Below are positions 484-35,406 of a DNA stretch of 64,000 bases, one piece after another. This stretch comes from Guillardia theta CCMP2712 (taxonomy: Eukaryota > Protista > Cryptophyta). The position numbers and the translations under genes are program-made. A model generated the notes under the pieces. It had not been told where the DNA came from. It ran no database searches and was given only the letters and a program-made list of their open reading frames with translations. The stretch lies in the NCBI RefSeq assembly GCF_000315625.1, contig NW_005434608.1:395483-459482 (forward strand), written 5' to 3'. Positions within the stretch are counted from its first letter, which is position 1. Every line of letters begins with the position of its first letter.

Positions 484-1188
484 GCCAAGCATGTGAGAGC
501 TCGAATATCGATTGAAATACGATATCAACAATCAAGCAATGGAGATGGAAAAAAGAACGGATCTCCTTGAAGCATCAAAACAATGAGGGAAGCAGGCCGT
601 ACTAAGATATCAGATGTGACTCATTGATTGCATCGTTCCAGTGAAAACCGGATTCTATGGCGCTCAAACATATCGAATGCTCTATCACGAGAGGATAAAC
701 AGTACACGTTCCATACATCATTTTCGGAAAGCGCTTTTCCCTCATGATGATTGAATCTTATGCAAGCATGCCTCTGCGACCCCACGACTCGTCACTGCCA
801 TCATCCACTGACTCTTATCCTCTAGCTCCATTACCCAATTCTTGACATCTGTTTCATCCTCAGCAGTCTTTCGTGACTTGCTTGCCTATCTTGTTATCTT
901 CGTTCATTCTTCTTCAACCTCCTCCTCTCCCCCGCGCCACTCCGCATCTCTTCGCAAAGGCCTCATGGTCAGGGCCATGGCGCGTACGTACTTGACTACC
1001 CACCACGGTACAAAATACTACCCTACCTAATTGGTGTGCTGTTCGTTGGTAACTGATATGGGTACTTGGACCGAAAGAGGAGTATTGAACTTAGAGGGGT
1101 GGGGTAGTGGGTAGGGGGATAAAATTTTCATTTTAAAGTTTTTAAGTTTTTACAGACGGTCTACTAAAAATCCAAGAGTAACGGTTCA

Positions 1189-4100
1189 TGTAACGTCGGA
1201 TGATCTAGTCGCCGATCGGAGTGCCATCGGTAGTGATAAATCTTCAGAGTCTAATCATGGCAAGCCGGCAGTCAGGTCCCCCGCCGTTCGGGCCCGGCCC
1301 GACACGGACCGGACCCGCAGGCCTGACTAACTTGTGTAAGAACTCAGGTTCTGACAAACCTCTCAGAAGTTCTTTCAGACGCGATAAGTTCAAGGGATGC
1401 GTCTAATCAGGTTGTGAACCAAGTGAAGCCTGCAGGTCCAAGCTAGTGGGCTGGAGCTTAGTCTGTGACTTAGAAGATCCGGTTGGTTGGAGCCTGGGGA
1501 AGCTGAGGCGACGCCGGAGGAATCAAGAGGCGCCGGCTGTCGAAGAGGCAGCACTCGTACAGTGGTGGAAGTAAGGCGGTGGTGTGTGAAGGGAAGCTGT
1601 TTGGTTGGTCTTGCTGCTACGAGTGTTGGGAATAAAGTGCTGGGGATTGTTGGGAAGTTGATCTGAGTTATCTGAGGTGTTTGGTTGGCTGTGAAAGTCA
1701 TTGGTGTCTTCGTGCGCACATCATCTGTGAGTCTTGGTCTTTGGACTTATCAGTCAGCTGTTGAGCTGTTCTACTAGTCATTCATCTGTGCACAGACTCT
1801 AGGAGTCAGGAATTGATTCCAATACAAAAAGAAAATTTTCTTTTTGTATTCACGAACAAAGGAATACAAAAAGACTCTACGATAAGATTCCAAGGACAAC
1901 GAGTTAAAGGGCTCTTGGTCTTTGTGCGTCGAATTGACAACGAGTTTGAAGGCTCTTTAAGGCTCCTGGTTGTTGTACTGTACGCTGTTACTCATTTTTT
2001 TTTGGAACGGTATTGGTAACTCCAAGTTGACGATCATGAGCATGCCAGATCTGCAAGAGGAGTTGAAACGAAGCCATGGTGATGTTCAGGTCGACAAGCT
2101 GAAGCATGGGAAGGTTACCTCCAAGGAAAAACTCGAGGACCTGTTCCTTCCTTTCTCAGGTGCCATGAGTCGTTTTCGTCCGAATCTTGGGGCTTGTTTC
2201 TTAAAACTGTTGGACTTGTTTCCGATTGACGAGACTGGATCGTTTGTTGGAGAATTTCATGAAATGTGGGAGTCGTCTCCAGAAGGTCTAGAAAAATTCT
2301 CTTCGCTGGAGTGGAAGATTCAGGTCACGGCGTTGTTTCTGCATGCAGGGTACATTTGGAAGAATGGGAAGAAATTCAAGGATGCTCTTGAGAAGTTTAA
2401 GAAGTTGCGAGGAAAATTCGAGGAGGCAATCGCAGCCAGCGAGGATGTGATTGATGGTGCTTCAGAGGATGGAGAGATGGGTAATCCACTCGATACATCT
2501 GTGGTTTTCTCTCCACACAAGTACCAGATATCACCGAGGTTGTTCAGATCCTCAGCTGATCGACAGGAGGTGGAAGTCTTATTTGAAGATATTGCTGAGG
2601 TACTTGTAAGCACGAACAGTTATTTTCGAGTGAAGCTAAAGGATGATTTCGACATAGAGTGGCAGATGTCAGGAGGAGGCAACTATCCTTTGGCATTCTT
2701 CAAAACTTTGGCACTGGTACGCTGGAATGTAAAGCAACGAAGTGGAGCTGAGCTTATCGAGCTTACTGAGGACGAAGGGAGAGATCAGCTCAGAGCGCTA
2801 GCGAAACAGCCACTTGAGTCTGAAGAAGCCTTCTGGAGGAACGTGGACAAAATCAAGCTACTGTTTAAGAATCTCAAGGATAGTATTCAAGGTGTTGTGG
2901 GGGCACACCAAAGGATGGGGCCGTTAGAGATCCAGATCGCTGAACTCTTGCATGCCAGGTGTAAAGAATCGACTTGTGAATCGTTGCAGTCATTGGCATT
3001 GAATAGAGAATTGCGAAATTGGAAGAAGAGTAATATGAGACCAGAAAAGATTTCTCTCGACGAAATATTCCACTGGGGGCGCATCTTAAAAACTAGAAGC
3101 AAGACGACTACGACCGTGACGCCCGCGATGGATGCGAAGGGAGACGTGTCAGTGGTGAATATCACTGTGGCAAGTGAACCGATGGTACCGAATGAACCGC
3201 AGGCTGTCGGAGAAGTTGCAGTGGGCAAGAAGAGATCCTCGGGGTCAGGCGAAAATAGTGGTCAAGCGGATTCGGGAGAGCATCGGTTGGGGGATGATAC
3301 TGAATATATGCCTGACGGTGCAATGTCTCCAGTTCCTCCAGCAGGCAGAAGAACACGGAGGGATTTCAAGGCGGAGCGAGGGGTCTTGGAAAGCAAATAT
3401 GTCAATCGAGATGTCGAAGTTCTTGTAAATGGTCAAGTAGAGCAAGGCAAAATTTTGCAGATGGTTTTCAAGGAGGGAAAGTTTCTCGCGCGGATTGTTT
3501 TCCCAACTCTCGACAATTACTGGGTGTTACGGTCTGTCACTGATCCTGACATCAAGTTTTTGGAACAAACCGAACAGAAGGCAATGGTGGTGCTTACAAG
3601 TGGGGAGACAATATCAGAGGCCTGCATGTTAGCAGATTATTACTCGTGCAGCTTTCCACCGAACGTCTTTGGTGATATGACCGACCATACCAAGGTTTTT
3701 AAACCCTGTCTTGATCGTGCAGCGGATGAGATCATGGATGTTGTCGAAGCTACAGTTGGGGGTTCGCCTGAAGTGGTTGTACTTTCCCAGCACAAGAAAT
3801 TTCCACAGTATCTGCAAGTTACACATATTGTGCAGGGGTCGACTGAATCTGAAGAGATCTTGTATGTTTGGGACAGGGGGGAAGACAGGACAAGCCTTCA
3901 GCCAGCATCCCAGCGTTTTGTTCCAGTATGGAGGGATGAGATGTACAAAACTCGTTTACAGCATGTCGATCCTGTGTCATCTGCCCCACAGGTCAGTGCT
4001 AATGTGGACCCTACTTTCAGGGATACGCGTCTTCTTGTGGCGAATCTAGCGTTGGTCTCTCCCGTATGGGACGCGGTGGAGCTGGCATCTGACCTGTTAT

Positions 4101-5047
4101 CTCTGATGTCTTCCGACCGTGACAATCCAGCTGCAATGCCTGAGAATCAGGCAGATTACGTGATGACAGCGGCTTGCGATGCAGGAAATGTGGAGAACGA
4201 AAGTAGTTTTGACAAGTTACCAGATCCCAAGACAAGGTCAGAGATGTTACGTCGTCCGGATCGGCATCTTTGGGAGCAGGCTGAAAAGGAGGAAATTGCG
4301 AAGATCGAAAGTCGTGGGGTCTGGGAAGTTGTTACGCGTGATCAGAAAAACAGGGAGTCAAATCATTCCGTCCTTGCTCGCGCCTTGTGGGTGTATGCTT
4401 CAAAACGAGACTTGAAGGGCAAGATCTTGAAACGAAAGGGGCGGCTAGTTATCATGGGCAACTTACTTCCTTCATCTGAAGAATTGTTTGCACCGACTAC
4501 ATCGTTGGACAATATCCGGCTCTTGCTGAGCATCGCGGCAGGCAACCGTTGGAGAATCACATTCAGGGATATCTCTGCTGCTTTCTTGTATGGTGACTTG
4601 GAGGTTCCTGTGTATTTGATTCCTCCAGATATCATGAGTCTTCCTCCTGAGTGCCTCCTCAAAGTCTTGAAGTCGCTCTATGGACTTCGCATTGCACCAA
4701 GGAGATGGTATCTTAAGTTCACGCAGGTGTTGAAGACGGTGGGAGCAAGTGGGATAGGACATGATGAGATCATCTACCGATACTCCAACTGTGCGGGGGA
4801 CGTCTTGCTTCTGACTGTCTTCGTGGATGACTTACTCATTGTCTCTCAAACTGAAGCAGTTAAGATTGAGTTTCTTGAGAAGCTCAACACAGTATTCGAC
4901 TTTTCGGGGAGTGAGGCAACAGGTACCTTCTTGGGCATTAAAATAGAACAGAATGACGATCAGGGTCGGATAACTTTGTCACAACAGCATTTCATTGAAA
5001 AGATTGTTGAACGCTTTGAAATCGTTGCCAGAGGTGTCAAAACTCCT
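1189..5047 (+). mobile_element. Ty1/copia-type retroelement, 3'-truncated (no RNase H, no 3' LTR); 5' boundary uncertain
   Basis: Intronless 1052-aa ORF ending in a copia RT, preceded by ~850 nt of non-coding leader beginning TGTAAC. The leader may be LTR/UTR, but this cannot be confirmed without a second LTR. Confidence 0.7.
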
Positions 5048-5128: not shown

Positions 5129-8100
5129 TGATCTCGCGCACTACAGTGAAGTTCCACTTCCCCTCAGCAACGCCCTCGACGTCCCACTCTGACGTTCCCC
5201 TCTCCTGCGACACACCCACATCCTCCCCCGTATTCCTCCTCGATCTTTTGCTCTGCACCAGGGACCGTGGGCTAGTCTCCTCGTCGAGACGCCGAGGAGG
5301 AGAGAGGCTCTTCTGATGCCGCTTGAGCTCGAGCTCTGTGACTGGAGCCTTCTTGGGCTGCTCAACAACAGCAGGCTCAGCGTCCGACTCAATCTTGCTG
5401 GTGAGGAGGAGCGGGGTGGACTGTGAGGTGACCTTGCCCCTCCTCGGGGAGATCGGGCGAATGGGGGAGTTGCTGTCCGTCGATGTCAAGTTGGTTGCAG
5501 AGCTGTTCCTGGGCAAACGCTGAGAGGGTCGACCTCTAGGCCTTCCCTTGCTGTTTCGGAGCGATGAGAAGAAGTCGTGGACATCGTCTTCGTTCACATT
5601 GCTGACCCGCAAAGGAAGCTGGAAGTTGAATGTTGTACCCTGGTAGCAAGTCAGGTCTCCAATGTCTGCTATCCCCTAGCCCTCACTTCCCATCTCCCCT
5701 TCCTCCTCTTTTCTTCCTCCTCCTTCCTTGCCCCCAAAGACAGGACGATCATCTCACCTTCCCAACTTCAGACTCGCACTGAATGTCACCTCCCATCAGG
5801 AGCGCGAGCTTTTTGCAAACGCTCAACCCCAGAGCTCCGTCCTTAAGAAGCTCCACACTGGTAGAAATGTCAGAGGCAAGCTGAGCTGACGCGGGAGAAG
5901 AAAGGGAGGAAGGTAAACGAGCAAGGGAGAAAGCAGCGAGAGTTAGTCTGCACTCACTCTCCGTCCACGAGGTTGTTCGAGTTATTGTGATTGCCAAAGA
6001 TCATCTTCAGCTGCTCCGAGTCCATACCAGGGCCATCGTCAATGACCAACATGCTGCAGTTGAAGCAGACGCGGCCCTTGCTGTCCACAAACGTCTCGGA
6101 GCCAGTCCTGGCCTCCACACGAATTTTCTCGATCTCTTCGTGATTGAGAGAGTGGGAGATGATCTTGGTCAAGACCTGCTGGATGCGGAAGGGATCGCCG
6201 ACCACGTTGAAGAACTGGAGCTTCGAGGTGTCGATGGAGACGGTGTCGCTCTCCTCGGAGAAATGTGAGCCAAGCGCTTCGAAGAGAAGGCGCAGGTCAA
6301 ACGTCAGCTCTTCAAGCTCTACTCCTCTGCAAGCATCAAGTGAGCGCCCTTAACGTCTGCAGCCCCTCTAATCACAGCCCTCCCTCCTCTCTTGCAAGCT
6401 CTTTCTCTCCCTCACCCTATGTTCTTTCACTCCTGCTCTTTCTCCTCTCTCACCCCATGTTGATCTTCGCGATGTCCAAGATGTCATCGATGATCTTCCG
6501 CAGCTGGTTCGCTCTCTCCCACGTCCCTTCCACCAGCGCGAACTGCTCGTCATCGATGTCCGTGTCTTGTAAGAAGGAGATGTTGCCCATGATGCCATTC
6601 AGAGGGTTTCTGATCTCATGGCACAGGAACTGCAGCTGCTCCATCTTTGCCTGCATGACGTGTGAGCCTATCATCTAGGCGAGAGAGTGTCAAGCAAAGA
6701 ACCTCATTGGCCGCCTCTTCTGCCAACTTGATCTTCTTCATGAGCTCCTTCTCTTGCCTCGTGGTCACGTCTTGCGCGAAGAAGACCACTCCCTCGACTG
6801 TGTCGTTGGTGGTGCGACGAGCTCCGGCGCTGACCAGCAGGTTCACAACCCCCTTGTTTCGCTTCTTGAAGATGACGTCGATGCAAGCGACTTCACAAAA
6901 TTTCATCGCATTCACTCGTTGCTCGTTGAGCTGCAAGGGATGACGTCAGCACAAGACACGCAAGGAACGCCGTTGTCCATCGCACCTTTTGACACATCTC
7001 GTTGGAGAAAACTTCCAGGTCGTTGCCAAATATTTCCCCGACAAGGCTCTTGCCGATCACTTCCTCGCGCTTCAACATGGTAATCTCCGCCATCTTCGAG
7101 TTCCACTCATTCACTTTGCCATCGTTCGTGCAGCAGAACACAGGGACGGCACACTGTGCGATCAACCTCTCATACTCAGCCGCTACCGACTGAGAAAAGT
7201 CCAAAGATCAGTCTTTTCTCGGTGAACGAATTCGGTGCAGACCAACCTTGCATCTCTCAAGAACAATCACTGACTCGGTGATGTCTTGACCAACAAACGT
7301 GACAGACGCTGCAAAGCCGCAGACTTTCTTGAGCACGTTTGCGTTCAGGAGGAGGTGAACGGTCTGAGAGAACAATCAAGAAAACAAAAGGATGAAGCAT
7401 AATTGCATGCAGACCTCTGACTTCTGCTTGTTGCTGAACATCTCAAGATGAAAAGGGTCTGTATCAATTCCTGCATTGGTATCGTCTAGGATGCTTGACA
7501 ACACAGTTCGGAACGACGCAGGGCAGAACTCCTTCAGCTCCTTTCCACATGCTTCTTCCTTTCGCAACGAGGAGAGTTGTTCCATCTTGGCGTTCCACTG
7601 CAAGCATGTGAACTCAGAAAAGACAGCAGACATGATCAATCCTGCACAGACCTGAATGATCACACCCGAACGATCTATGCTGAAGATTGGAGCATTCGCA
7701 GCGGAGATGATGTTAGACAGCTGGACAAATGTGAGATGGAAATCATGCTTGCACGTAAATCACCTCTGTAGCCATACGAAAGCTTTCAGTTCTGCTCTTC
7801 ACCCGCTGCTCATGAATTCTCATGCTCATGTCTTGGGTCAACTCTTGCCCTGTTGCCCACGACAAGATGTCGTTGACAAACTTCCCGAGATCCTGCACAT
7901 CCTCCAGGTCGCTCTGAGACCAGTCACGGCAGCCCGCCTCAGCGGACTTGTCATGCTCGATCTGTCTAAACCAGAGCAGCTCGCCTCCCATCTTGAGGGG
8001 AAGGCAGAGCATTCCACATGCGCACAAGGGATCACAATCATACCCCGAAATGATGTCGCGCACATCCCTGCTGCTCGAAAGCTTCCTGTCACTGTCGCTG

Positions 8101-9383
8101 TAAATCTCATCCACGAGCGCCTTGATGAAGTTCACATCCGGAGTCCTTCCGATGGTGTGGACCTCGCCGCTTGGCATGACAACAGCTCCTCCTGAGGTGT
8201 GGGGGACCACGGAGAGGAGGGAAGTCTCCTGAGATGCCACCAGCCCCTTGAGCGTGTCCACTCCTTCAAGGTTCTGCATCAAGTCCAGCAAATCTCCATG
8301 GATGTTGAGTAGCTTTGACAACCTTGCCTGCCGCTTCACCTCCATCAAGGAGTCCAGCTTGGAGAAGAAAGCCTGGCTCACGAAGTCGCACACAACTCGG
8401 TCATTGATCGACATGTGCTTAGGTTGCGAATAGTTATATCCGATCATGAGGCCCCAATCCCCAACTCTCTTGGTCCTGATGGACATCACAAAGAACGACC
8501 TGATGCCCATCGAGAGGAAATATTCCTTGGTGAAAGGATCAGTTGCCAGGTAGCTAGACTTGAGGATAGAAATCTGCGATTTGCTCAATGGGCCCAGGGC
8601 TTCCTTCACGAAGCACATGGGCTCGTAGTCAGCGTTGAGATCACGATCGATGCAGAGATTCTTAAAGCCGCACACTTGGAGCAACTGCTTGCTGGCACTC
8701 TGGAACAGGAACGTGGAGTCTTGGACGGACGAAGCCTTGTCCTCTGCGACAGGGATGAGGAAACCATACTCACTTTCAGAGGTAGAGAGTTTGTACAGCA
8801 CAATGCGCTCGTAGCCCAAGATAGAACGCATCGTTGAGACAACAGTGCTGTAGAGGCTCTTGAGATCGCGCTCGGCGAACACGTTTTCAATGGTTTCCCG
8901 AAAGCTGATCGTCAACTCAATCGGAGACTCTTCTTCTCGGGGCTCGATGTCAAGGATGACGTGGTCGTTCTCGTACACGAAGTGAATGTACGATTCCACG
9001 CCGCCCTTGAAAGTCACGTTGAAGGTGCCTGTAGACATCGAGTCTTTCTTCGCTTGCAACTCCGGCCAGGGCAGATTCGAGTCCAAGATTAGCTCGGACC
9101 AAGTTTTCCCGAGAATGTCATTGACAGCCCGGTTGATGATGCGATCCACGTTCTTACTGCAGCCAACCACCTTGCCAGTAGAGAGGTTTGCTACCAAGAC
9201 TGCGCCCCCCGGCTGCACTCGATGGCAGGAAGGTTCACCGTAATATGGGATTTGGATCGGAGCTCCCAAATCAGAGCGGGGGACATGACTCAAGTTGTTG
9301 CTGCTCCTTGTCCTACCTCGGCTTCGCATAAGCCTGGAGCTTATGATCTGATCCATCTCGTAGTACCTACGCCCAGCACCCAT
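5037..9383 (-). CDS. Phytochrome-like sensor histidine kinase (PAS-GAF-PHY-PAS-PAS-HisKA-HATPase), multi-exon, with a degenerate chromophore pocket
   Basis: VQPGGAVL (PAS), GYERIVLYKL..VAEDK (GAF), WGLMIGYNYSQPK, LLWFRQ..W (PHY), PAS exons (APIFSIDRSG.., WNAKMEQLS, PVFCCTNDGKVNEWNSKMAEIT), LCHEIRNPLNG (H box), DDGPGM (G1), GALGLSVCKKLALLMGG (G2). Confidence 0.85.
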
Positions 9384-21533: not shown

Positions 21534-24500
21534 CTATGTGACCTCCTCGTCCGTGATGAAGTGGCTACCACCAGCACATTGGTAGCCTCCATCAACCTTG
21601 ATCCACTCAAAGTCCATCGGGCACCTTCCGAGCGCCTTGATCCTCTCCTGCCTCGCCTCCTCCTCCGCAGTCTTCTGTTGCCCTTGCTGAAGGATGAGAC
21701 GCCTGACCTGCTTCAAGAAAGGAAGCCTGCATCCTTCTAACCCGTACCGCACCTTGTCCTTGTCCTGAAACCCTCCTTGTCTCATCACATGATCCACTAC
21801 ACGATCGTCGATGGATCGACTGAGCATGGCCTCCAGGTCATCGAGGGAGTAGCCCAACTCCTTGCAAGCTTGCTCCAGGAGGGGAGATAGCAGACTGGGA
21901 TCTGCCGAAGAGCTGTCTTGCTTTCTTGTGTTGAGAAGGACTTTCTTGATGTTTCTGTTCCTCACAGGTTTAGCTGCTGCAGGAGGAGTCGCCATGGGAG
22001 CTTCGAGGACATTTCCTTGTGATGTTGAAGATGCTGGGTGAGCAGGCGATCTCAGCCATGAGCTGTGTTGGCTCGGCTCAGCAGGAAATGATTCTTCCAT
22101 TCGAGTCTCCTTGCGCTCGTTCTTGACGTCCTCCTCCATCTCCTTCTCCGTGCCAACCTGACTTCTTCGTTGAAAGATCTCTGAGAACGTTTTCTCGATG
22201 TCCTCACTCGTGTACGATCCATCCACACTTTGACTTGGGGTAGTTGATGCTTCGCGCAGGCGATAAGCACGGTGGCGGTACAGCCCCTGTACAAGCAGTC
22301 AGACGTTCGAGCGTGAGATGGGAGACAATACCGTGAGGACGATCTCCACCACGTCTCGAGCTGAAGCCCATCCTTGTAACTTGGTCAGCCTCTCGTACTT
22401 CTGCAGGAGAAGATCGTGGCATTTCGATGAAATCTCGATCCCAGCCCTCTTCACTTCCTCGATCGTAGCATTCAAAGCTTGACTGGCCGTCCATGCGTCA
22501 AATGTCAACCTGTACTTGTCAAAGCGACTTCGGAAACCAGGGTTCACACTCTTGAACAGCTTATCCATCTCTTCTTCATAACCTGCAAGGATCACCAGCA
22601 GATTTCCCTTGAACTCCTCTTCGGTCATCAACGATATCATCGTCTCTACAGCCTCCATCGCGTACGATGACGTGTAAGTCTCGTTGCTGTGCTTCGAGTT
22701 GCAGAGGCTGTACGCCTCATCCACGAACAAGATTCCTCCTTTGGCCCGGCTCATCGCCTTTCTCACGATCGTCTTGGTCTCTCCCACATACGTCCCTTGC
22801 AGAGATGTGCCGCTGACGACGATGACATCATCAGAGGGGAGCACGTGCAGCTTCTTGAACAGCCTCCCCATCCGTCTCGCTACTGTCGTCTTCCCTGTCC
22901 CCGGTGGTCCAACAAAGACCATGTGGCTGTCAGCCAGCACGTCTGCTGGATCCCGCTCCTCTCTCTCCGCGATCGAGACCATGGCGATGATCTGCTCCAC
23001 CATAGTCTGCACGTTGGAGATGTTGTAGAGGCCGGCAAAGATGGCATCCACCGACTCGTCGTCGTTCTCTATCTCAAAGTCAGCCAATGTGAGGACGTTC
23101 CACTCCATGGCTGATCCAGCAGCCGTTGAGAGCCGTCTGGCCTTGTTGACCTGCAGTGACTCGCGTTACACTGGGTAACGATCTCAAAGCAGGAGCTCGC
23201 CTTGGCCTTGTTCACCAGAGAGGCAACAGTCGCTGCGTTCCTGGTCCCGTGCAGTCAGCGATCAAGGCAGGAAGAGGCGGCTGGGCGAGTGGTACCCGAA
23301 GTTAGGGAGCCTCCTCCGCTGCCAGAGAAAGCGAGAGATGGTAGGGATGTCTTCAATGTCGGCGAACTTGAGGCCCTCGTCCTTGACCTTCATGGTCAGG
23401 ACCTGCTGCATCTCGTACTCGTTGAGGTCCTCAAAAAGAAGCCCGAAGTCATCAAAGTTGAATCTTCGCTTCAGTCCCGCGTTGTTCTCAAACATGTCCT
23501 TCATCTCTTGTTTGTAACCTGCCAACATACTTCATCGATGTAGATAAGCGAACACTTGTCTCACCCGCAAGAATGACTGCAGACCGGCATGTGATGAAGC
23601 GAACGCAGCTGCGAGTCAGCAAATGACAGGAGCGCACCACAACAATTCAACCTGCGATGTCGCTGCCTGCTTCACCATCCAGCTTCTCCACCAGGGTGTC
23701 CAGCACGTTCCCACCATATTGGTTGGCCTTGCGGTTGGGGTCGAGGATGTACGCTTCATCGATGAAGAGCACCTTACCTCGCGCCTCCTCTATCACGTTC
23801 TTGGTGATAGTCGCCGCCGATCCTTCAGCGTTGCCTGTCAGGTCGGAGGGAGTGACTTGGATCAGGTCCCCTACGGAAAGGAGGGAACATTCTTTGAGGA
23901 GCTGACCGTACAGTCGAGCTACTGTTGTCTTCCCGGTCCCTGGGTTCCCATAGAAGATTCGATGCAAGGAGATGCTTTCAGGTTTCCCTCCCAGCAGCTC
24001 GTTCTGGTACGAAATGGCGCACAACTCCACCAGTTTGGTCATCTGCTCCTTGACATTCTTCAGCCCGATCATCTTGTTCAGTTGCGCTAGTGTCTTGTTG
24101 TCTTCTACTGAAGGCTTCGTCCCCAGGGCGTCTTGTGTGGTTATTGTTCGATACTCCTCCACCCTGACCGGTTTGTTCGCCAGCTTCAAACTTCCCAATC
24201 GTTCCATCTGATTGTGTACAATGTTCTCCACGATCTTTTCCACGTCCAGCGCATTTCCGAATCCCACCTTTGGTCGATTGCCAACGAGCCTTCTGGCCAG
24301 GGTTTGAGAGAGGTCGATCTTACACAGATGCTTCGGCTCCAAGTGAAGGCCTCTTTCCCTTAGAAACCGAATGAACAGGCGCTGGAGTTGACGCTCGCTG
24401 AAGTCAGGCAGCTCGATGGTGTGGATGATGGAGGTGAAGGGAATGAGATGCGTCGACAGCCTCTCTCTTACCAGCATGCGGTCCCCGATGATGATGAAGT

Positions 24501-27500
24501 TTGTGTTGACTCGGTGACGACGGATGAAGGCGAAAAAGCTGTCCAAGACTTGATTCGACTCGTTGGGCTGCTGATCTTTGGGCCTCGGGATCAACTGGTC
24601 CACGTCATCAAGGACGAAGCATCCTCCGATCGCCTGCGTCATCAACGTCTCCAGTCTTTGCGCCGGGTCCTTCTCCTTGAGAACGTCGAAGGTGCTCGCC
24701 TCAACAAACTTCGCCTCCTCGGATGCAAGCTGACACATGGAGCGGCCCAACAGCTTCCCAGCTGTAGTCTTCCCGGTCCCTCGGTTGCCGATGAGGAGGA
24801 GGCACTGAGAAGCATGAATGTGGTGCTTGATGGGCGAGTCCTTGTTGAGAAGCGCCTAACGCCAGCAGGTCACTCGTACGACTTGTCGCTGCCTCCGTTA
24901 CCTTCTTGACATGCACCAGGGCATATCGTTTGAGCTCCGACAAGCCTTCTAGACCTATCAGCCTGCGAGGTAGCGTTAGATCCACAGGGAGCAGCGCAAG
25001 CATATTGTGCGCTTACTGGTCCAGCGACTCTGAAGTGAAGCCGTATGCAGTCTTGGCAGCTATCCATTCTTTCTCTTCTTGGGATGTCTTCTTCTCAAAC
25101 AGCCGCAGGTCAGCAGTCAGAGGCTGCTCCTTGAGCTTTCTCAAGTTGTCTTGCTTGACAAGCTCATAGGTATCCGTGTGAACATTCAGGTGATGAAGAA
25201 CCATCAGCGCACAAGCACTCTGAAGCTCTTCAGGCATGGTCAGATCGCTTGTTAGCAAAAAGTGGAGATAGTAGACGTAAAAGAAGTAGGGATCGATCAC
25301 TATAGTCTTGTGCCTGATGACATCTTGGATGTAAATGTCGAGCTGCTTCTCGGCCTCGTCGATGCTGAATCCTCTTTCAATCAGCGAGCAGGCATAATAA
25401 ATTCGAGCATCCATGTTTGTTTTGCACCCATCTCTGCACTTCTCCATGAACGGACGGTTGATGGCGTCTTGTGATGTGAGACGCAAAACATCTTCCCGTA
25501 ATGACAAGATCTCTTCTGACAGCATCGGTTCAGCTCGAGAGAGAATGCTGCAAATAATCTTGGCCCTGTCATGATCTTTCAATCTCATGAAGAAATTTCC
25601 TTGCCGGATGGCATGATGTACATCTCTTTCTCTTCCGCCTGCCAGAAATATTCCATCTTCGAACATAGCTACACTCTGAAAGAAATGGTTTTCAGTCCAG
25701 ATGTTTGCTCCAGCTTTTATGAGAGCATGTAACGACTTTTTCAACCCGGCCAGGCTCAAGTAGTGAGCTATAGTATTCCCAAATCGATCGCGCAGGTTCA
25801 GCATGTCAGCCATTGTCTTGATGACTCTGGTCATTTGACTTCCATCGTATTCTTCTCTCAACTGAGAATCTTCTGCTTCCATCGACTTCTGTATCGAATT
25901 GACTATCGCGTTGTTCTTCCGTTCGCTGCTGATCGCTCCGAAAGTTTGCATTCCTCTGCTCACGAGATGATTCTGCTCGGGCTGACGTTGGACCGACTTG
26001 TTCTCTCCCTGACTCACTGGCAGCACATCGAAGGCAGGAAAGGGAGGAAAGTCAGCAAATCTCGGTCGAGATCGAGTCGGAAGGGAAACAAGGCGAGAAG
26101 CGTCGACTGACTGAGTCGCTCCATTGATCTCCACCTTCCTCTCACTAGCTTCAAGCGTGTGCTCCTCCACCGAAAGTTTTCCCACTGAAAACTCAGAAAA
26201 GCTTTCGCACTGCCCTGTCAAACCCTGAGACAGAACAAGCACATACATGTTCTTCGATTCGGGCAATCTGTCCTGATTGGCATTCTTAGTCTGCACTCGT
26301 CTTGCGAGATCTCTGTCAAGACTGCAACAGCTGATGGCCTTCTTGTATTCATCGCAGGTAATGTAATCATTACACGCCGGCAAGGAATCAAAGATCTGGC
26401 TCACTTGATCCTGGTGGATTCTTTGCTGCAGGCTCTGGAAAAGAACTTCAGAGAGTACTCGTCCTTTGCGCTCTTTGTCAAGTCTGTTAAATTCGTAGTT
26501 GAGATCTGGAACATGAAAGTCAGGGCAGTTCTCTCGTGCCTCATCACACTGCACGCAAGAAGCTTGTTTCAAACTTGACACTCGTGAGCACTGCTTGCAT
26601 CGATAAAAGGTTCGCAAGTTTCCACACATCTTGCAGCCTTTCATTCCCCGATTTCCAGAATATCCGCAGGAATCACACTTCCAAGTAGCGACATGTTTGC
26701 TGATGATCATTTGAGTCATCTTGTCGTAGTCATCGTGTCCCATCAAGATCGGACGAGAGCGAGCAAGCTTGAGTTTCATTCTCTTGCGATGCCACTCGAT
26801 GAAGTACGCAAGCGCTTTTTCATCCGAAACAGTCTTCAACTCCCACAGTCGTGACCATGCTTGAAGCGTGACAAGACGAGTGATTTTCTCGACGTCGATC
26901 TCGCTGCTGACACCAAGTTTTGACAATGCTTCTATGAGCGACTTCTCATCGTCCTCGTCAAATTGAGCAGCATGGGAAGATTTGCACAAAGCGCTGGAGG
27001 GAAGTAAGCAAGGTCGTGAGCTTTTAAAGTCCATCCAGACGACTTGTACATTTCTCTGAATACTTTCGCGCATCACTCCGGCATGTACTACAACCCCAAC
27101 AGCATTCTTGCCTACCTTGACAGTTTCTGGACTTCCCAATTGGACCACATCTCCTCGCCGAAAAACGTTAGCATCTTCAGGTCTGAGATCTTTCCCATCG
27201 AAGAACTCTATCCTAAACGGATCTTCTTCTGCATAGACTGCGACGTTTTTCATTCCTTCTCCATCAACATTGCCCAAGGAACATACGACAACTCCGACTT
27301 TTTGCTGAGTAGCAGTGCCTAAGACTGTAGAGTTCCCCTTATACTGGTGATCTAGTTGTACTCTGGTTCCGCCCTGCAAATAATCACACGGCACCAACAA
27401 TATCGCCAGACCTCTGATTTTGCAGTTGATGCCGCCTGAATCATGCACATGTATTCTTACAACTTTTGCATCGCTGTTCGTAAGCATTGTGAAACTTTTG

Positions 27501-28799
27501 AGATCGTCAGACTTCGAAATCGGCAGCTTCAGTTTTCCCTCAGATCGAAGCTTTGATTGCACTTTCTTGGATGTCAAGACCTCAATTTGCTTCGGGCAAT
27601 AACTATCATCGCTACCTTTAACAAACATTTGAACAGACTTGATGAGGTAGCCTTCGGCAATGTGAGCCTCAACCCAGTGCTCGCCAGAACGACCATCCGA
27701 TTGCCAATATGTGGACTCATCTTGATCAAAGAGCCGGTCAAGTGTTGACGACTTACTTGAACTCTTCATGTCAATGACTCCTGCAGGACCTGAACAAGCA
27801 ACGTGGAAAGTCAGAAAAGCCGGAGCCCGGCATTTGCAGCAATGTTATGTACAAACGTGGAAATGAAAGCATCTGCATTCCCACTTAAAACTCCCATCCT
27901 GCTTGACTCACCACTAAAGCTTGAATCGTCGCTAGCGCTTGATTCTCCGCTAGAGCTTGATTCTCCGCTAGAGCTTGATTCCTCTGAGCCCTTGCTAGAG
28001 CTTGAGTCTGTGCTCGATTTATCTGTGCTCGATTTATCTGTGCTCGATTTATCTGTGCTCGATTTATCTGTGCTCGGGTTGTCTCCAGGCGAGATTGGCA
28101 CATCTTCTGCTGGCATCCATCCAAACCTTGTTCCATCCGCAAAACTCAGATCCGATGCGGAGTAGGTGCAAATAGCGCCACTGAAACCAAATCAAACACG
28201 TCTCACACGCACAAACACGCGCACTTCTTTAACGACGCCACTTTGACCTGATAGTCTTGAGAAGCTCCTTGGACTTCAAGCAAGTGACGGCTGGTCTCTA
28301 GCACTATGCCATATCGATCTTCCTGTGAGAATCCCAGGCAGTGGTGAAAGTCTGCAGCACAGAAGGAAAGCTCAGCATCAACAGGTACTGATGACATGCG
28401 CTTCTTTGAACTCAGAACCACGAGGTCGCCAGCCTGAAAATCATCGAAATTTTCCAGAACCGTGTCTCCGACTGCTTCGTCCTCGACCTTAACATCGGAT
28501 TCTTGCACAGAGCTTCTTGATTGCAAGAATTCAAGAAATGCTTCATCGGTCTGTTTGATAGATTCTTTGTTCAGAAACCACGTGATCTCGTCCTCCACAA
28601 ACGTTAAACTCTGTTCTTCTGGATTACAGCCTTGAAAGCATTTTGCTAATTGCGTGGAGGTTGTCATGAAGCCGGCATTGGATTTCTTGACAAACAAGGT
28701 GGTGAGGTCGAGCTCGACTTCACCCTCGTTGCCGTCAAACTTGAAGTCTGCGATCTCGTCCAGCCGGAGCGACTCATGCCTCGACAGCGACGGCGGCAT
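21534..28799 (-). CDS. Giant multidomain AAA+ ATPase: SH3-like repeats, DOC/APC10, 2x RanBP2-type Zn finger, EF-hand pair, ankyrin, 3x CbbX/SpoVK-type AAA, C-terminal C-x4-W-x6-Y-x-C-x-GG-x-H motif; roughly 2,200 aa
   Basis: ORFs join across short introns (e.g. ESLDQ|LIGLEG at ~25015-24962). DOC: TYWQSDGRSGEHW..SDDSYCPK. ZnF: WKCDSC..CKMC and CKQC..CVQC. Ankyrin: DRFGNTIAHY. Walker A: GNRGTGKTT, GNPGTGKTT, GPPGTGKTT. Walker B: FVLDDV, LFIDEAY, LFVDEAY. Confidence 0.85.
27935..28076 (+). repeat. Coding tandem repeats: 18-bp (CTTGATTCTCCGCTAGAG) and 15-bp (GATTTATCTGTGCTC x4), giving SSSGES and SSTDK linkers on the minus strand
   Basis: Directly visible; unit lengths are multiples of 3, inside an exon of the AAA gene. 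Confidence 0.9.
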
Positions 28800-28913
28800 G
28801 TCGGACCCCAGCAAAGCCGACGAGGTACAAAACGTGTCGAGTTGCGAAAAGAGGTTTTTTCATAGGAACAGAACGTGTCAAGAGGAACAGAACGTGTCAT
28901 AGAGCGACTCGGC
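28800..28913. promoter_or_regulatory. Putative compact bidirectional promoter with a 17-bp direct repeat AGGAACAGAACGTGTCA x2
   Basis: 114 nt between divergent predicted ATGs. Repeats at 28864-28880 and 28883-28899; a third AACGTGTC core at 28831-28838. Confidence 0.6.
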
Positions 28914-31900
28914 ATGGGTTGCGGCGGAAGCGTCCATGCCACCTCCAGCCCGTCAGAGGTTCCGATCGACGTGGCCACGAGTGAGTTTCCGCTGCATGCT
29001 AGGTTCCAAAGAGAGACCGCGTCCATCGCTGCAGCTGACATGAGCACGCTCAAGTCTACCAATCCAGCAATCTACCTGTGCAAGGGGCCTGATCGAAGCC
29101 TCCTGCACAAGCTGGAGATGAAGATGCGGTCGTCAGGGTTTTATGTCCTCGACATAGCAAACGTTCCCAAGGACGTGTTTTTGAGTCACTCGTGGCAGAA
29201 CAAACTTGATGGGACCAGCACTCATGAACAAGTCAAACGAATTAGTATCGAACTAGAGAAGCGAGGATGGTCGACTTTCTTGGATGAGAATGACATGAAG
29301 CCTAATCTGAAATCTTGCATGGCTCAGGCGATAGAGCAGTCATATGTCGTGATCATCTTCTTGACCAAGAGTTACATGGACAAGGTGAACAACGATGACG
29401 TCAACGACAATGTCTGCTTCGAGTATTCAGCGACTATCAGCCAAAAAGGCTCGGGAAGAATGTTTATCCCTGTCATTCTTGAAGAATTCGAAGTGAGAAA
29501 AGGGCTGCAGTTTCCCAAGGACTCGAAGGCATGGTATGGGCCCGTAGGAGCTGAGATCGGGAAGAGGAGGATGTACCTTGATTTCCTGAATTCCACAATG
29601 TTCGAGACCAACATGAATCGACTTGATCAAGCTCTGAAGGAGCTTGTTCCCATCAAGCACTCTCCAGCTGCCAAGATGTATAACACGATATCATCAGGAA
29701 TCATGAGAAGCGATGTGGTCGTGATCTTTGTTGGCAAAGGGACCCTGCAATGTAGCACTGTGTCTGAGGAGTACATGGTGGCAGTCAGCATCCAGAGACC
29801 AGTGTTGCTGGTGATGTATGACAGAGATGTTTCGGTAGAAGAATGTACCCGCATGTTTCCTTCCAATCATGTTCTGAATCTGTCGGATAGCTCTTTGCAA
29901 GTGGGGGATCAGGGCTGGTCGGAAGCAGTTTATGCGAAAATTCTGCAGATCTATGAGCAAACGAATGAAATTGACACGAATGCCACGTCAGCCGGGAGGT
30001 CTCAAGACCAATCAGAGCCAACAAGTAAACGAGATGTCGATGCAACAAGGTCTTTTTCAGTGGAAGAAGTTGTGGGATGTATTGGGGGCCGAATAGTTGC
30101 GTCAAGAATCGAGTTCAATGATTCTCATGTCATAGCACAAGGTGCGTGTGGTAGAGTTTATCGTGGAACACTGCAATCTATAGGCAATGTAGCTGTAAAA
30201 GTTCTCTCACCCATTAATGGCAAACCACCTAGCAAAGAGCAATATGATCAGCTTGTTAGAGAAGCAAAGATTCTCAGGGTAGTGCGATCGCCTTTTTTTG
30301 TTCAAATGCTCGGAGCCTGCAACATAGACGACGATAATGCTGACTCGACAGCAATTTTGGATTTCCGTTCAATCGTTTTCACCTTGTACGAGAACGGAAC
30401 ACTTCATCAGCATCTCTTCGATGCAAACTATAGCAAACTCCCTTGGAAGCTTCGACTGCAGATCTTGTGGCAAGGTCTTGCTACACTTGAGAGCTTTTGA
30501 AGCGACTGACTTGTATACAGCTGCCCGTGGACTGGTAGAGTTGCATAATCTTGGGGTTTATCATCTAGATTTCAAGCCGGCGAATATCCTTCTTGATGAG
30601 AAGATGAACGCAAAGATTGGTGACTTCGGGCTCTCCAAGGTGATTCACAACCAGGCTGATACCATGGACTCCCGACTGCTGCTTGCCATGTCAAGAACCC
30701 GCCATAGTGCAGCAGGCACAGGTCAAATCTTGCTTTGAAAAGCATTTTGCATACGTTGATGACTGGTGGATGTTGCAGACGGATACATGTGTCCCATTTA
30801 CGTACAAACCAAGAGGATTTCACAGTACATCGATATCTACAGCTTCGGAGTGAGTTTGATGCAAATCGTCCGCAAGGAGCATGCCGTCACTGGCGATCAA
30901 AAGCTGCTCACAGAGAAAGTTGCAGATGACGTTCGCACGAATGATTTGAGCCAGTGGAGGTATGATCGGGAAGCAGACTGGGACGCCGGAACAGCGAGTG
31001 ATATCACGTTGTTTGCGTTGCAATGTACAGACCTGAAGGAGAGCGAAAGACCTTCAGTCGAACAAATCCACATTCAACTTTCGTCCGCCCTCGGAGTGCA
31101 TCAGCGCATCGATGACACACCATACCTGTTCATCCGAGTGAAGTTTGAAGGGCATCGGGAGCTAAAGAAAGTGTGTGTTAGCATCAACGCGGACCTTGAC
31201 AGCGTGAGGGAGAAGCTGAGAAGTCAATTCAGACTCAACTGGAGGTCGTGTGAAAGTATCACGTTGAAAGGAAGGCGCTTGTCGGAACTGTTCATAATCA
31301 GGGACATGATGTCTCCGGGGTTCGACCCGAGCTTTGACGTCAAGACGGACACTCTTTATTTCCAGTCAAGCGTGCGGGCTGAACCAGAGCAAGTGGAGGA
31401 GAACAAGTCGAAGCAAGCAACGTCCATGAGCTCCAACAAGTCCATCAAGGCAAAGCATCGTCCCATCCTAAGTGCATTGGCGATCGCTGCTGCTCCAGGT
31501 TCACCCCAGGAAATCAAAGAAACCATTGCGCCTTCTCTAGATATTCTATCGAGTGAAGGAATCAACCTTAAAGATGTTTACGAGAAGATCTCACAAGGTA
31601 GCAGAGATGCTGAGAAATTGGCCCAAGGCTTATCAAAGAAAGAAAAATTGTACGTCATGCATATTTTGGAGCTGCTGAAAAACAAAAATGCAAGAAAGAT
31701 AGCAAAGCTTGCAGCTCGAGACATGCGCTCAGCTTTGTCTCAATCGGATTCATCGTCGGGTTCACCGTCAAGCTCATCGTCAGAATCTGAATCAGAAAAG
31801 AAGGATAGTGGACAGGAGAAAACGAAGAAGAAAAAGAAGTATCAGATAGTCTATGAACGTTTCAAATCCTTCTGGGAGCGACTTGCCAAGATCGCGGCCC

Positions 31901-34900
31901 TCTCCCCCCCTCCCGAGGACCTTCTCCTCAAGCTGGAGCTGGACTACTTCGACAAGTCTGTCATCCAAGACCTCGAGGCCGCCAACTGGTCCCTCCGAGA
32001 AGCCATCCAGCTCGTCTTGATCGAGGGCAAGCGAGACCTCGACGAGGTGGCTGGCGACGTCGACGACAACAGCAAGGCGAAGCTTGGGCTGTTCTTGAAG
32101 GAAGTCGAGGCGCAGGAGGCTCGCCTGAGGGCCGCAGGAGAGTCGGAGCTGTTCAAGCCCTCCCAGCGCCCCTCCTCCTCTACCGAGAACAAGCTGCTGG
32201 CCAAGTACGACCGCGTGCTGCAGACCTTGGCGTGGCTGCTGGTCTCGCCGGACGCGGAGGGGAAGCAGAGCAAGGCAGCGGCGCTCCGAGAGCTCGTCGA
32301 GCCTCATCTCCTCCAGGATCGCCTCGACATCTTGACGGCGGCAGACGCGCTCGCCGTGGGCACGAGGAGCAAGGAAGCTCTCACCGCCGGCAAGTCGGAG
32401 GCTGAAGCTCTGCTCATCGACAGGCTGCTCGAGCATGTCCACGCGGGGGTCAATGACCTCTCCTCGCGGCGAGCGAAGCACAACCTCGACGTGCTGGAGG
32501 CTCTGGGCAAGAAGGAAGACGCCTGGAGCGAGCAGTCGGCTTTGGGTATCAAGCAAGCGAAGAAGCACGACCTGCTATGGAAGCGCTTTGTGCAGCTGGT
32601 GCTGAAGCCGTCAGAAGCGAGCAAGTCACGGTATCGGATCTGCTCTGGGAGCCAAGAGGACGAGATGAAGTGTATCTTTGATGACATCTTACCTCGCATG
32701 GAGAAGTGTGGGTGGGACATTCGGATCCCTCTGATCAGGTTTCGAGAGGGTGAAACTGACAGAACTCGGTTTCTTGCAACAGTGACGGACAAGAATGATT
32801 TGCAACTGCTGGAGTATGTGTTTGATAACTACATTGCCAGTCATCTACCTCAAAGCTCTAGCTCGGTCTTTCACTGTGACAGTAGCATTGCATGGTTCTC
32901 TCTGCAACAATTCACTCTTCTGTCCTGTGTTGCTCAGCTAAGCAGCCAGGACTTGTTTGACAGGAGTGATTTCAGGCTGGCTCATCAAACTCTCCATGAA
33001 GTTCGTCGTATGTATATGGATCAGCTTTTACGTGCTACAGCAGACAACTATACCTCCTTGATCCCCAAAGTTGAGAAATTCTGGGATGGAGTGCGTGATG
33101 AAAATGTCTTGATCTCAGATCTTGACGCTGACGAGGCAGCACTGATGAACATCCTTCTTCGATTGCATACTGCTTTCTCCCAGAGCTCAGCCGACAGACA
33201 GGCGTCAATCAATGCGATTCTAAAAGATCTCCTGCCCAAGAATGAAATCGAGGTTTGTTTGTGTAGCTGATACGAATATCAAAGCATATGAAGCTCCTGT
33301 TGGGCAGGTGTTGATCGTTGGGTGGGCGTGTGTAGATGATTCGAGAGACCTGAAAGTTAAACAAAACTTGCGGGACAGGATAATATTTTACATCCTCAAT
33401 CAAGCGACCTCGGACTCATTCCCTGAAGAGCTTGAGGTATATGAGACAAAGTCTCAACCCCTAGCTTGACTGCGTTGATTGTCGACAGGATGCTTTGGAT
33501 CAACTGCTAGCCGTCCATGTTGTTACTGAAGCTTCAATGTTGTCGTCGCAAAGGTTTTTCATGAATTCGCTCATTTGTCCTTGTCAGGAATAGACTAGAT
33601 GGCAATCATGCTAAGTTTTTGCGGCAAGTCATGATATGCATAAAAAACATCAGCCCATCTTTGCTCAAGGTAAGAAAGCATGATACAGATCTCCGAACAC
33701 ATAGCAGTGGTGCAGGAAGCTGTGGACAACAGCACTCAAGTTGCGATCAAAACCAACATGTTGACGGAGAGTGCATATGAAAAGACTTTTCGCTCGAAAG
33801 AAGACGCTTTTCGTCGTGCTGCTCAGGTGATTTGGCTACTGAGGTGTTCCACCCTCAAGATCACATGGAGCTGAACACATTGCGACAGCTCTGTGATGCA
33901 GATTGCGCCGAGAGATATAAGACAGAGAGGATGTTTCCAGGTGCGTGTACTTTCATTCACCTCACGACAGTCATGTTTCAACATCAGGCACATTGGAGAG
34001 GGAGCGAGAACTGATGATTTCTCACTTCTTTGAGGTGAGGAGATGCTAGCATAGATTTAACCATGTCGGCACTGAGTTTCAACATCTGCAGCCGATGAAG
34101 GAAAAGTTAGGGTCTGGCATCACAGACGCGATTAAGAAGATGTGGAATGGAACGCTATCTCTCTCTAAACTCTGCGAAGGTCAGAACATACGGGCCTTGC
34201 TCCTTCTTGCCACCTGAACCTGCGCTTTCAGATCTTAAGGATACCAAACACGTTGGGGCGAGATTCAGCATTTGGAAAACCATCAAATTCACAAAACAAT
34301 ATGGTTTGAAAGATTCAACATGTGCAGATCCAGATAAAGGCGAGATCATCTACTACAACGACGAGACAGAACAAGAAGAGGATGAGGGGAATGATATTTG
34401 GACCCGATTCAAATCCTTCTGGGAGCGACTGGCCAAGATCGCGGCCCTCTCCCCCCCTCCCGAGGACCTTCTCCTCAAGCTGGAGCTGGACTACTTCGAC
34501 AAGTCTGTCATCCAAGACCTCGAGGCCGCCAACTGGTCCCTCCGAGAAGCCATCCAGCTCGTCTTGATCGAGGGCAAGCGAGACCTCGACGAGGTGGCTG
34601 GCGACGTCGACGACAACAGCAAGGCGAAGCTCGGGCTGTTCTTGAAGGAAGTCGAGGCGCAGGAGGCTCGCCTGAGGGCCGCAGGAGAGTCGGAGCTGTT
34701 CAAGCCCTCCCAGCGCCCCTCCTCCTCTACCGAGAACAAGCTGCTGGCCAAGTACGACCGCGTGCTGCAGACCTTGGCGTGGCTGCTGGTCTCGCCGGAC
34801 GCGGAGGGGAAGCAGAGCAAGGCAGCGGCGCTCCGAGAGCTCGTCGAGCCTCATCTCCTCCAGGATCGCCTCGACATCTTGACGGCGGCAGACGCGCTCG

Positions 34901-35406
34901 CCGTGGGCACGAGGAGCAAGGAAGCTCTCACCGCCGGCAAGTCGGAGGCTGAAGCTCTGCTCATCGACAGGCTGCTCGAGCATGTCCACGCGGGGGTCAA
35001 TGACCTCTCCTCGCGGCGAGCGAAGCACAACCTCGACGTGCTGGAGGCTCTGGGCAAGAAGGAAGACGCCTGGAGCGAGCAGTCGGCTTTGGGTATCAGG
35101 CAAGCGAAGAAGCACGACCTGCTATGGAAGCGCTTTGTGCAGCTGGTGCTGAAGCCGTCAGAAGCGAGCAAGTCGCGGTATCGGATCTGCTCTGGGAGCC
35201 AAGAGGACGAGATGAGGTGTATCTTTGATGACATCTTACCTCGCATGGAGCAAGACGGGTGGGACATTCGGATCCCTCTGATCAGGTTTCGTGATGGGAA
35301 AAGAACGAAAGATGATTTGATTCAGGGCATTGAAGACCCTCTTGATGTACAACTGCTGGAGTATGTGTTTGATACATACTTTGCAACCTCTGTCTGCGAG
35401 AATTGA
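28914..35406 (+). CDS. Predicted N-acylated TIR-TIR / IRAK-Pelle-like kinase / ubiquitin-like / helical-repeat protein, multi-exon; roughly 2,000 aa
   Basis: MGCGGS start; [40 protein letters not shown]; kinase [54 protein letters not shown]|[20 protein letters not shown]. Exons can be traced through 33.3-34.2 kb (e.g. intron 34180-34231 restores KLCE|DLKD). Confidence 0.85.
31858..32827 (+). repeat. Intragenic duplication, copy 1 (~0.9-1 kb)
   Basis: Near-identical to 34405-35374 at a constant offset of 2547 nt. Confidence 0.95.
34405..35374 (+). repeat. Intragenic duplication, copy 2
   Basis: Only a handful of substitutions versus copy 1 over the first ~840 nt, then progressive divergence. 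Confidence 0.95.

Follow-up and report, generated by a model that had tools for sequence, protein, structure and literature searches.

A predicted Guillardia theta gene that places TIR-type domains and a non-RD, RLK/IRAK-like kinase in one chain

To our knowledge, no two components of innate immunity are more widely shared between plants and animals than TIR domains and IRAK/RLK-type kinases, and in both kingdoms they are joined only via separate proteins. Can a eukaryote far from both kingdoms carry the two in a single chain? Here we analyse a locus of the cryptophyte alga Guillardia theta that raises this question. It lies in a 64-kb stretch of a nuclear contig (positions 395483-459482; the window, whose own numbering is used below) in an assembly of 87.1 Mb and 669 contigs. 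The window is nuclear eukaryotic DNA, as seen from its long open frames cut by short segments with in-frame stops. A reading of the letters alone (the original prediction) had placed at 28914-31370 a lipid-anchored protein with TIR domains, a non-RD kinase of IRAK/Pelle/RLK type and a ubiquitin-like segment in TBK1/IKK layout. We find it rather probable that the locus is one nuclear cryptophyte gene for a lipid-anchored protein, in which a TIR nested in a second TIR-like domain is followed by a non-RD, RLK/RLCK/IRAK-like kinase, a possible beta-grasp domain and an orphan tail. A literature search yielded no description of this gene or of a TIR-kinase fusion in algae.

The gene model was predicted from reading frames and AG/GT donors and consists of three exons with 4251 nt, corresponding to 1417 codons:

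28914-30474, plus strand: exon 1 (520 codons and 1 nt), with the N-terminus, both TIR-type domains, a linker and the kinase N-lobe to helix E
30475-30520, plus strand: intron 1 (46 nt, GT-AG, AAG/GT...ACAG/C, phase 1)
30521-30721, plus strand: exon 2, with the catalytic loop, DFG and a long activation loop
30722-30778, plus strand: intron 2 (57 nt, GT-AG, CAG/GT...GCAG/A, phase 1)
30779-33270, plus strand: exon 3, an open frame with its stop at 33268-33270

All motifs listed in the original prediction are present in the DNA (MGCGGS, HLD, YMCPIY and the segment LFIRVKFEG...DTLYF), and the gene structure had to be revised in two respects. The kinase is cut by the two short introns, the second of which holds an in-frame TGA (30736-30738), and the frame has no stop at 31370: neither a stop nor an obvious donor follows DTLYFQ, and the open frame gives a protein about twice the length assumed. 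The first junction is confirmed at the protein level, with its product LQILWQ-A-ARGL matched by the transcript RLQIAVQAARGL of the cryptophyte Hanusia phi and a Hanusia transcript fragment reading RLQIAVQAARGLLDLH across the same point. Splicing at the second junction restores the expected kinase motif GT.GY..P, and a Hanusia fragment ends exactly where intron 2 sits in Guillardia. Protein searches were made exon by exon rather than with the joined spliced protein; the three kinase exon pieces align to residues 149-254, 259-311 and 319-424 of P0092, a plant-type LRR-RLK kinase, and are thus collinear with nothing missing.

The chain starts with a putative lipid anchor:

28914-28931, plus strand: MGCGGS N-terminus (ATG GGT TGC GGC GGA AGC), with Gly2 (N-myristoylation), Cys3 (S-acylation) and Ser6

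The ATG at 28914 is the first of its frame, with an in-frame TAG 48 nt upstream (28863-28865), and the Hanusia fragment P0035, which opens with MGCGFS, can be aligned with the Guillardia protein from the first residue onward (46% identity). On the strength of this upstream stop and of the start of the Hanusia orthologue, MGCGGS is, judged by sequence, the true N-terminus, as had been proposed. Gly2, Cys3 and Ser6 are kept in both species (MGCG[G/F]S), which gives the pattern expected for dual acylation: Met1-Gly2, Cys3 and a small residue or Ser at position 6, all at a true N-terminus. N-myristoyltransferase substrates with Cys3 palmitoylation are known among Src-family kinases, G-alpha subunits and plant RLCKs, and dual acylation is the likely, predicted modification of the Guillardia protein. 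No transmembrane-like segment was found across the whole 1417-codon model (maximum 19-residue hydropathy 1.21).

Two Pfam families match the region behind the anchor: TIR_2 at residues 88-194 (60.6 bits against a cut-off of 28; E-value 2.6e-16) and ThsB_TIR at residues 231-304 (26.8 bits against a cut-off of 21.2; E-value 7.2e-6), the latter with profile positions 24-97 only. The presence of TIR domains thus agrees with the original prediction, and their arrangement does not look like a simple tandem, with one TIR predicted inside the other domain:

29067-29153, plus strand: first beta-alpha-beta of a predicted outer TIR-like domain, about residues 52-80 (AIYLCK...FYVLDI)
29163-29648, plus strand: inner complete TIR, residues 84-245, with Glu170 in the motif DNVCFE
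29664-29990, plus strand: predicted remainder of the outer domain, residues 251-359 (alpha-beta-alpha-beta-alpha-beta-alpha)

An AlphaFold (AF2) model of residues 40-395, run with an 84-sequence alignment, had a mean predicted local distance difference test score (pLDDT) of 73.8. The inner TIR scored above 90 and was modelled with a flavodoxin-like, SARM1-like fold; an exhaustive library search yielded 1385 relatives, nearly all aligned to residues 86-245, which marks it as a complete and widespread TIR. The first part of the outer domain (E13-16, H22-34, E38-41) was modelled at pLDDT 54-77 and its remainder (H212-226 to H298-320) at 55-77. The elements around the insert are ordered as they would be if an entire TIR had entered another, ThsB-type TIR-like domain behind its second strand, and on this model we propose such an insertion with moderate confidence. 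The first outer beta-alpha-beta is kept in Hanusia fragment P0035, and the remainder of the outer domain in Hanusia fragment P0001 and in the metagenome contig L008. Glu170 is nearly invariant across the 84-sequence family alignment, and the profile of the inner TIR matches the Cat1 NADase at 5e-9; HMMER places Glu170 one turn from the Cat1 catalytic motif, and an ungapped reading places it on the catalytic Glu. A PDB search (phmmer) with the inner TIR alone gave no matches, and PADLOC gave only a weak bSEFIR/TIR match.

The kinase follows in the same chain and spans both introns:

30096-31095, plus strand: protein kinase domain of the TKL type, non-RD, across three exons
Landmarks, plus strand: VAVK Lys429; HLD, 30562-30570; DFG (GDFG), 30622-30630; CPI in place of APE, 30790-30798; DIYSFGV, then ERPS

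Pfam kinase pieces were found in all three coding blocks. The Lys, the alphaC Glu, the HLD Asp, the Asn and the DFG are all present, the residues by which an active eukaryotic kinase is recognised. The catalytic Asp is not preceded by Arg, as the original prediction had noted, and HLD is also present in Hanusia P0001; this is therefore a non-RD kinase. Its activation loop exceeds that of the P0092 kinase by about 10 residues. In PDB searches, the best solved relatives of the Guillardia N-lobe were FERONIA, Pto, an RLK pseudokinase and SYMRK, and those of the C-lobe RKS1, FLS2, IRAK4, SYMRK, BIK1 and LysM-RLKs; at E-values up to 0.1, 36 of the 38 PDB matches of the C-lobe were to RLK, RLCK or IRAK4 kinases. 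The Hanusia sequence from the N-lobe to the activation loop ranked a lectin-RLK (76 bits), SYMRK (74) and Pto (71) ahead of RIPK and CERK1 (57), CTR1 (54), Raf (52) and RIPK2 (50). The best kinase-only match among 1.84 billion proteins was a plant-type LRR-RLK, and the kinase of a metagenomic relative opens with the classic RLK/IRAK lead-in. The gatekeeper, located by alignment with the lectin RLK, is Phe in Guillardia (IVFTLYENG) and Tyr in Hanusia (IIYRFYENG). The kinase is most probably, as judged from these matches, an RLK/Pelle/IRAK-like member of the TKL group. The nearest relatives are members of the proposed family; the N-terminal Death domain of IRAK/Pelle proper was not found, with no Pfam match at E-values up to 0.1 and the N-terminal region taken up by the TIRs.

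The gene is single-copy in its own genome, and its only close protein relatives come from Hanusia phi, where three transcript fragments tile the same order of TIR and then kinase, in support of a genuine fusion of the two in one protein. A third relative with the same order of TIR-in-TIR and kinase belongs to a GC-rich eukaryote represented by the ENA metagenome contigs L008 and L009 (about 1.9 kb). It has a different N-terminal region without the MGC start, and its contigs stop in the kinase N-lobe. Two metagenome scans yielded no further relatives. A word-based protein search with exon 1 returned a single Hanusia fragment; this and the other word-based searches are subject to length limits, and their libraries apparently lack the Guillardia genome.

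How does this chain compare with known systems? In choanoflagellates, 'Kinase TIRs' consist of a Pkinase followed by a TIR, without a transmembrane segment; they were reported as specific to choanoflagellates, and a chain of this kind was proposed to bypass the recruitment of separate kinases (Richter et al. 2018, PMC6040629). The Guillardia protein resembles these Kinase TIRs and the Kinase TLRs in having kinase and TIR in one chain, and the Kinase TIRs also in lacking a transmembrane segment. The order of its domains is reversed, however, with the TIRs ahead of the kinase, which places it outside the definition of the group. Its acylation motif, the nesting of one TIR within a TIR-like domain and its extended orphan tail are additional features (the choanoflagellate proteins being compared by published description).

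The Myddosome (MyD88-IRAK4/Pelle) likewise passes a TIR input to a TKL kinase; the Guillardia C-lobe has IRAK4 among its best solved matches and shares the motif DIYSFGV with it. Activation by induced proximity, as in the Myddosome, fits the logic of a TIR-kinase fusion. The Myddosome, however, links its parts via Death domains on separate proteins, whereas the Guillardia coupling is covalent, with no Death domain found, and IRAK4 is an RD kinase, unlike the HLD kinase described here. Among solved structures, the plant RLCKs (Pto, BIK1, PBL2, RKS1, RIPK) rank first or close to first for both lobes and, like the Guillardia protein, they have no ectodomain. Many of them (Pto, BIK1, PBS1) have an MG(C/S) N-terminus that carries a myristoyl or palmitoyl group, and they work directly downstream of immune receptors. 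They have neither TIR domains nor a long C-terminal tail, and compared with them the Guillardia kinase has about 10 extra residues in its activation loop and CPI in place of APE. The sequence identity of the Guillardia TIR to SARM1-type and bacterial NADase TIRs is only 13-20%, scaffolding TIRs score almost as well against it, and the SAM and ARM domains of SARM1 are absent. The TBK1/IKK layout that had been invoked is recognisable as a layout, with a small candidate beta-grasp right after the kinase and then a long tail, but the Guillardia kinase is TKL/RLK-like rather than of the IKK family, and the segment shows no sequence similarity to ubiquitin or to a ubiquitin-like domain (ULD). Another TIR protein of G. 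theta (L1IYH1) makes cyclic ADP-ribose (cADPR) and depletes NAD+ (bioRxiv 10.64898/2026.04.20.719644). L1IYH1 is a different protein, of the Roco-TIR type, and identity with the TIR-kinase was rejected.

For the TIR-kinase itself, the analysis establishes how the gene is built, which domains it encodes and in what order, that the anchor motif and HLD are conserved, and which proteins are its nearest relatives. That the protein is lipidated, oligomerises, is active as a kinase and as an NADase and has any part in immunity is inferred, and these properties might be connected as follows. Lipidation of MGCGGS (N-myristoylation and S-acylation) would tether the soluble-type protein to a membrane, where a stimulus would lead to self-association of the TIR module, possibly accompanied by NAD+ cleavage, given that the conserved Glu is present in the inner TIR. 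Self-association would bring the fused kinases together, allowing trans-phosphorylation on the unusually long activation loop and an onward signal, with the beta-grasp candidate and the tail possibly serving in regulation or docking. One chain would in effect combine the adaptor step (MyD88-type TIR) with the initial kinase step (IRAK/RLCK type).

Several observations weigh against this interpretation. The APE Glu is replaced (CPI in YMCPIY), and loss of this residue can weaken the C-lobe and occurs in some pseudokinases. The family assignment of the kinase was derived from the ranking of nearest-neighbour matches, not from a tree, and exon 2 by itself ranks GCN2 and Chk1 first, owing to its Ser/Thr-type D.KP.N loop. 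The outer TIR-like domain was modelled at a pLDDT of only 55-77, and in a shape search with the TIR model no Atlas cluster had the nested form, the inner TIR alone being matched. The 5' end, both introns in Guillardia and the 3' extent of the gene are models, and a recent duplicate of neighbouring DNA with foreign-looking base composition in the 3' part could mean that the long frame is partly young or mis-modelled. The tail has no usable relatives in Pfam, in an Atlas feature search or in a word-based frame search with exon 3. The domain content, finally, is the only link between this gene and immunity.

In the main rival reading, the output would come from the TIR, acting as an NAD+-cleaving enzyme like those of SARM1, bacteria and algae and leading to signalling or cell death via NAD+ depletion or cADPR-type products; the kinase, perhaps weak or a pseudokinase, would only regulate or localise it. 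The Glu kept across the family, the match to the Cat1 profile, the cADPR production and NAD+ depletion by the other G. theta TIR (see the preprint cited above) and the missing APE Glu are all in line with such a role. The core catalytic residues of the kinase are nevertheless all kept in Guillardia and Hanusia, which on sequence evidence argues for an active enzyme, and we regard a TIR-only output as possible but unlikely. It is similarly doubtful that the kinase is a lineage-specific TKL which resembles the IRAK/RLK family only superficially, in a fusion that arose by an independent domain shuffle unlinked to the animal TIR-IRAK axis. The best paralogue in the same genome is only 29% identical, the RLK scores are modest (37 bits for the N-lobe and 21 bits for the C-lobe), Raf and RIPK2 match the Hanusia kinase at least as well as BAK1 and FERONIA do, the Pfam search gave no Death domain, and the gatekeeper is Tyr in Hanusia only. 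Against this, the Guillardia N-lobe, the Guillardia C-lobe and the Hanusia N-lobe with catalytic loop each rank RLK, RLCK or IRAK kinases first, and the lead-in FS..E.., GT.GY and DIYSFGV fit the RLK/IRAK family.

Two further alternatives concern the part of the frame behind the kinase, which comprises the following segments:

31117-31368, plus strand: candidate small beta-grasp or ubiquitin-like domain directly after the kinase (LFIRVKFEG...DTLYF)
31369-31857, plus strand: Ser/Lys-rich, low-complexity linker with a coding signal in the annotated frame
31858-32838, plus strand: orphan duplicated module, with a second copy at 34405-35384 in the next downstream open reading frame (ORF)
32839-33270, plus strand: end of the open frame (stop 33268-33270), with a weak in-frame codon-usage signal

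The first of these segments had been read as beta-grasp-like, and the positive evidence for this fold comes solely from look-alikes in a language-model feature search, a soft kind of support. The recognition value was high (3135), and the top named clusters were GRHL1_C (0.92), Ubiquitin_GT-1, TDP-43_N, CIDE-N, ANKRD40_UBL, PB1 and Rad60-SLD, which we take, from their names and general knowledge, to be beta-grasp or ubiquitin-like families, the fold not being stated by the tool. The segment might instead belong to some other small fold or be a partly disordered linker. Pfam matched no family at E-values up to 10 (including ubiquitin, ULD and PB1), a single-sequence AF2 model of the C-lobe with the candidate ULD had an unusable mean pLDDT of 32, and the same region had no relatives in a word-based protein search with which to compare conservation. 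The PDB matches of the segment (phmmer) were sums of single ankyrin-like motifs of designed repeat proteins and were judged spurious. On the other side, apart from the look-alikes, the low-confidence AF2 model keeps strand-strand-helix ... strand-strand in the expected order, and the codon-usage signal of 31117-31368 is the best among the non-duplicated segments. A different fold or a linker is thus a serious possibility, if somewhat short of even; a beta-grasp fold appears the somewhat likelier outcome from the sequence features, and homology to the ULD of TBK1/IKK is much less likely.

The C-terminal 630 residues are orphan sequence, and it is open to doubt how much of them belongs to the mature protein. 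Positions 31858-32755 are 98.6% identical over 899 bp to 34405-35301 in the next downstream ORF (34147-35406), with homology fading by 32838/35384, and a 231-bp piece that is 100% identical to the module is present on another contig (C127, 55069-55299). The G + C content at third codon positions (GC3) of the module is 0.81, compared with 0.53-0.57 in the TIR and kinase exons, and the last 512 nt of the frame have a negative in-frame codon-usage score. Because of the near-identical duplicate, the high GC3 and the negative end, the C-terminal third may be a recent acquisition or a gene-conversion tract, and the 3' model is the weakest part of the gene; 32839-33270 may conceal an intron that stays in frame or may be a recent extension. 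From the same observations one could conclude that the frame after about 31860 lies outside the mature protein, through recent duplication, gene conversion, an assembly artefact, or a different mRNA end or splicing. A stop-free frame of 829 codons is, however, very unlikely by chance at 50% GC, and the linker (31381-31857) carries a coding signal in that frame, which makes complete exclusion of the tail clearly unlikely. As a separate observation, the translation of 32839-32960, within the negative codon-usage segment, looks non-protein-like and possibly represents an unspliced in-frame intron.

We thus retain the lipid-anchored TIR-kinase chain, with its possible beta-grasp domain and orphan tail, as the favoured explanation. 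Its strongest form, a one-chain receptor-proximal signalosome conserved across cryptophytes, in which a dual-acylated, NADase-competent nested double TIR drives a kinase of the RLK/Pelle/IRAK clade, seems quite improbable when taken as a whole. If true, it would mean that TIR-to-IRAK-type functional coupling is older than the divergence of animals, plants and cryptists or evolved convergently for a third time, and that insertion of a TIR within a TIR is a new way to build a TIR oligomerisation unit. The gene extends the 'Kinase TIR' idea, previously reported for choanoflagellates only, to a tractable alga far from both kingdoms, with TIR and kinase in one chain and a conserved membrane anchor. 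It offers a simple system for asking whether TIR assembly or a TIR-made nucleotide directly switches on a kinase, and whether the TIR-to-IRAK-type link is ancient or convergent.

The region upstream of the gene is short, with the ATG of a head-to-head neighbour at 28799 (minus strand) and 114 nt between the two start codons. This gap contains a further feature:

28865-28899, plus strand: 16-nt direct repeat GGAACAGAACGTGTCA, two exact copies, 3 nt apart

By chance, 0.05 copies would be expected, and these two are the only exact ones in the genome; the repeat may be a promoter element common to both divergent genes. The neighbour (21534-28799, minus strand) encodes an APC10/DOC-type domain, at least two AAA+ ATPase modules and a weak NACHT-like match, and this APC10/DOC-AAA+ gene probably shares a promoter with the TIR-kinase gene.

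A repeat motif in the tail (W/L...G.RD...L...L, 'G.RD'), with five copies recognised by eye 111-143 residues apart (31381-33267), proved no better than shuffled sequences and was discarded. Elsewhere in the genome, on contig C33 (176000-185999), a 1270-residue Roc-COR-TIR ORF (616-4428 of that segment, plus strand) is convergent with an 810-residue kinase ORF (6099-8531, minus strand), the latter being the best own-genome match to the N-lobe of the TIR-kinase (29% identity). The genome holds at least 17 TIR_2 loci, mostly in ORFs of about 1300 residues.

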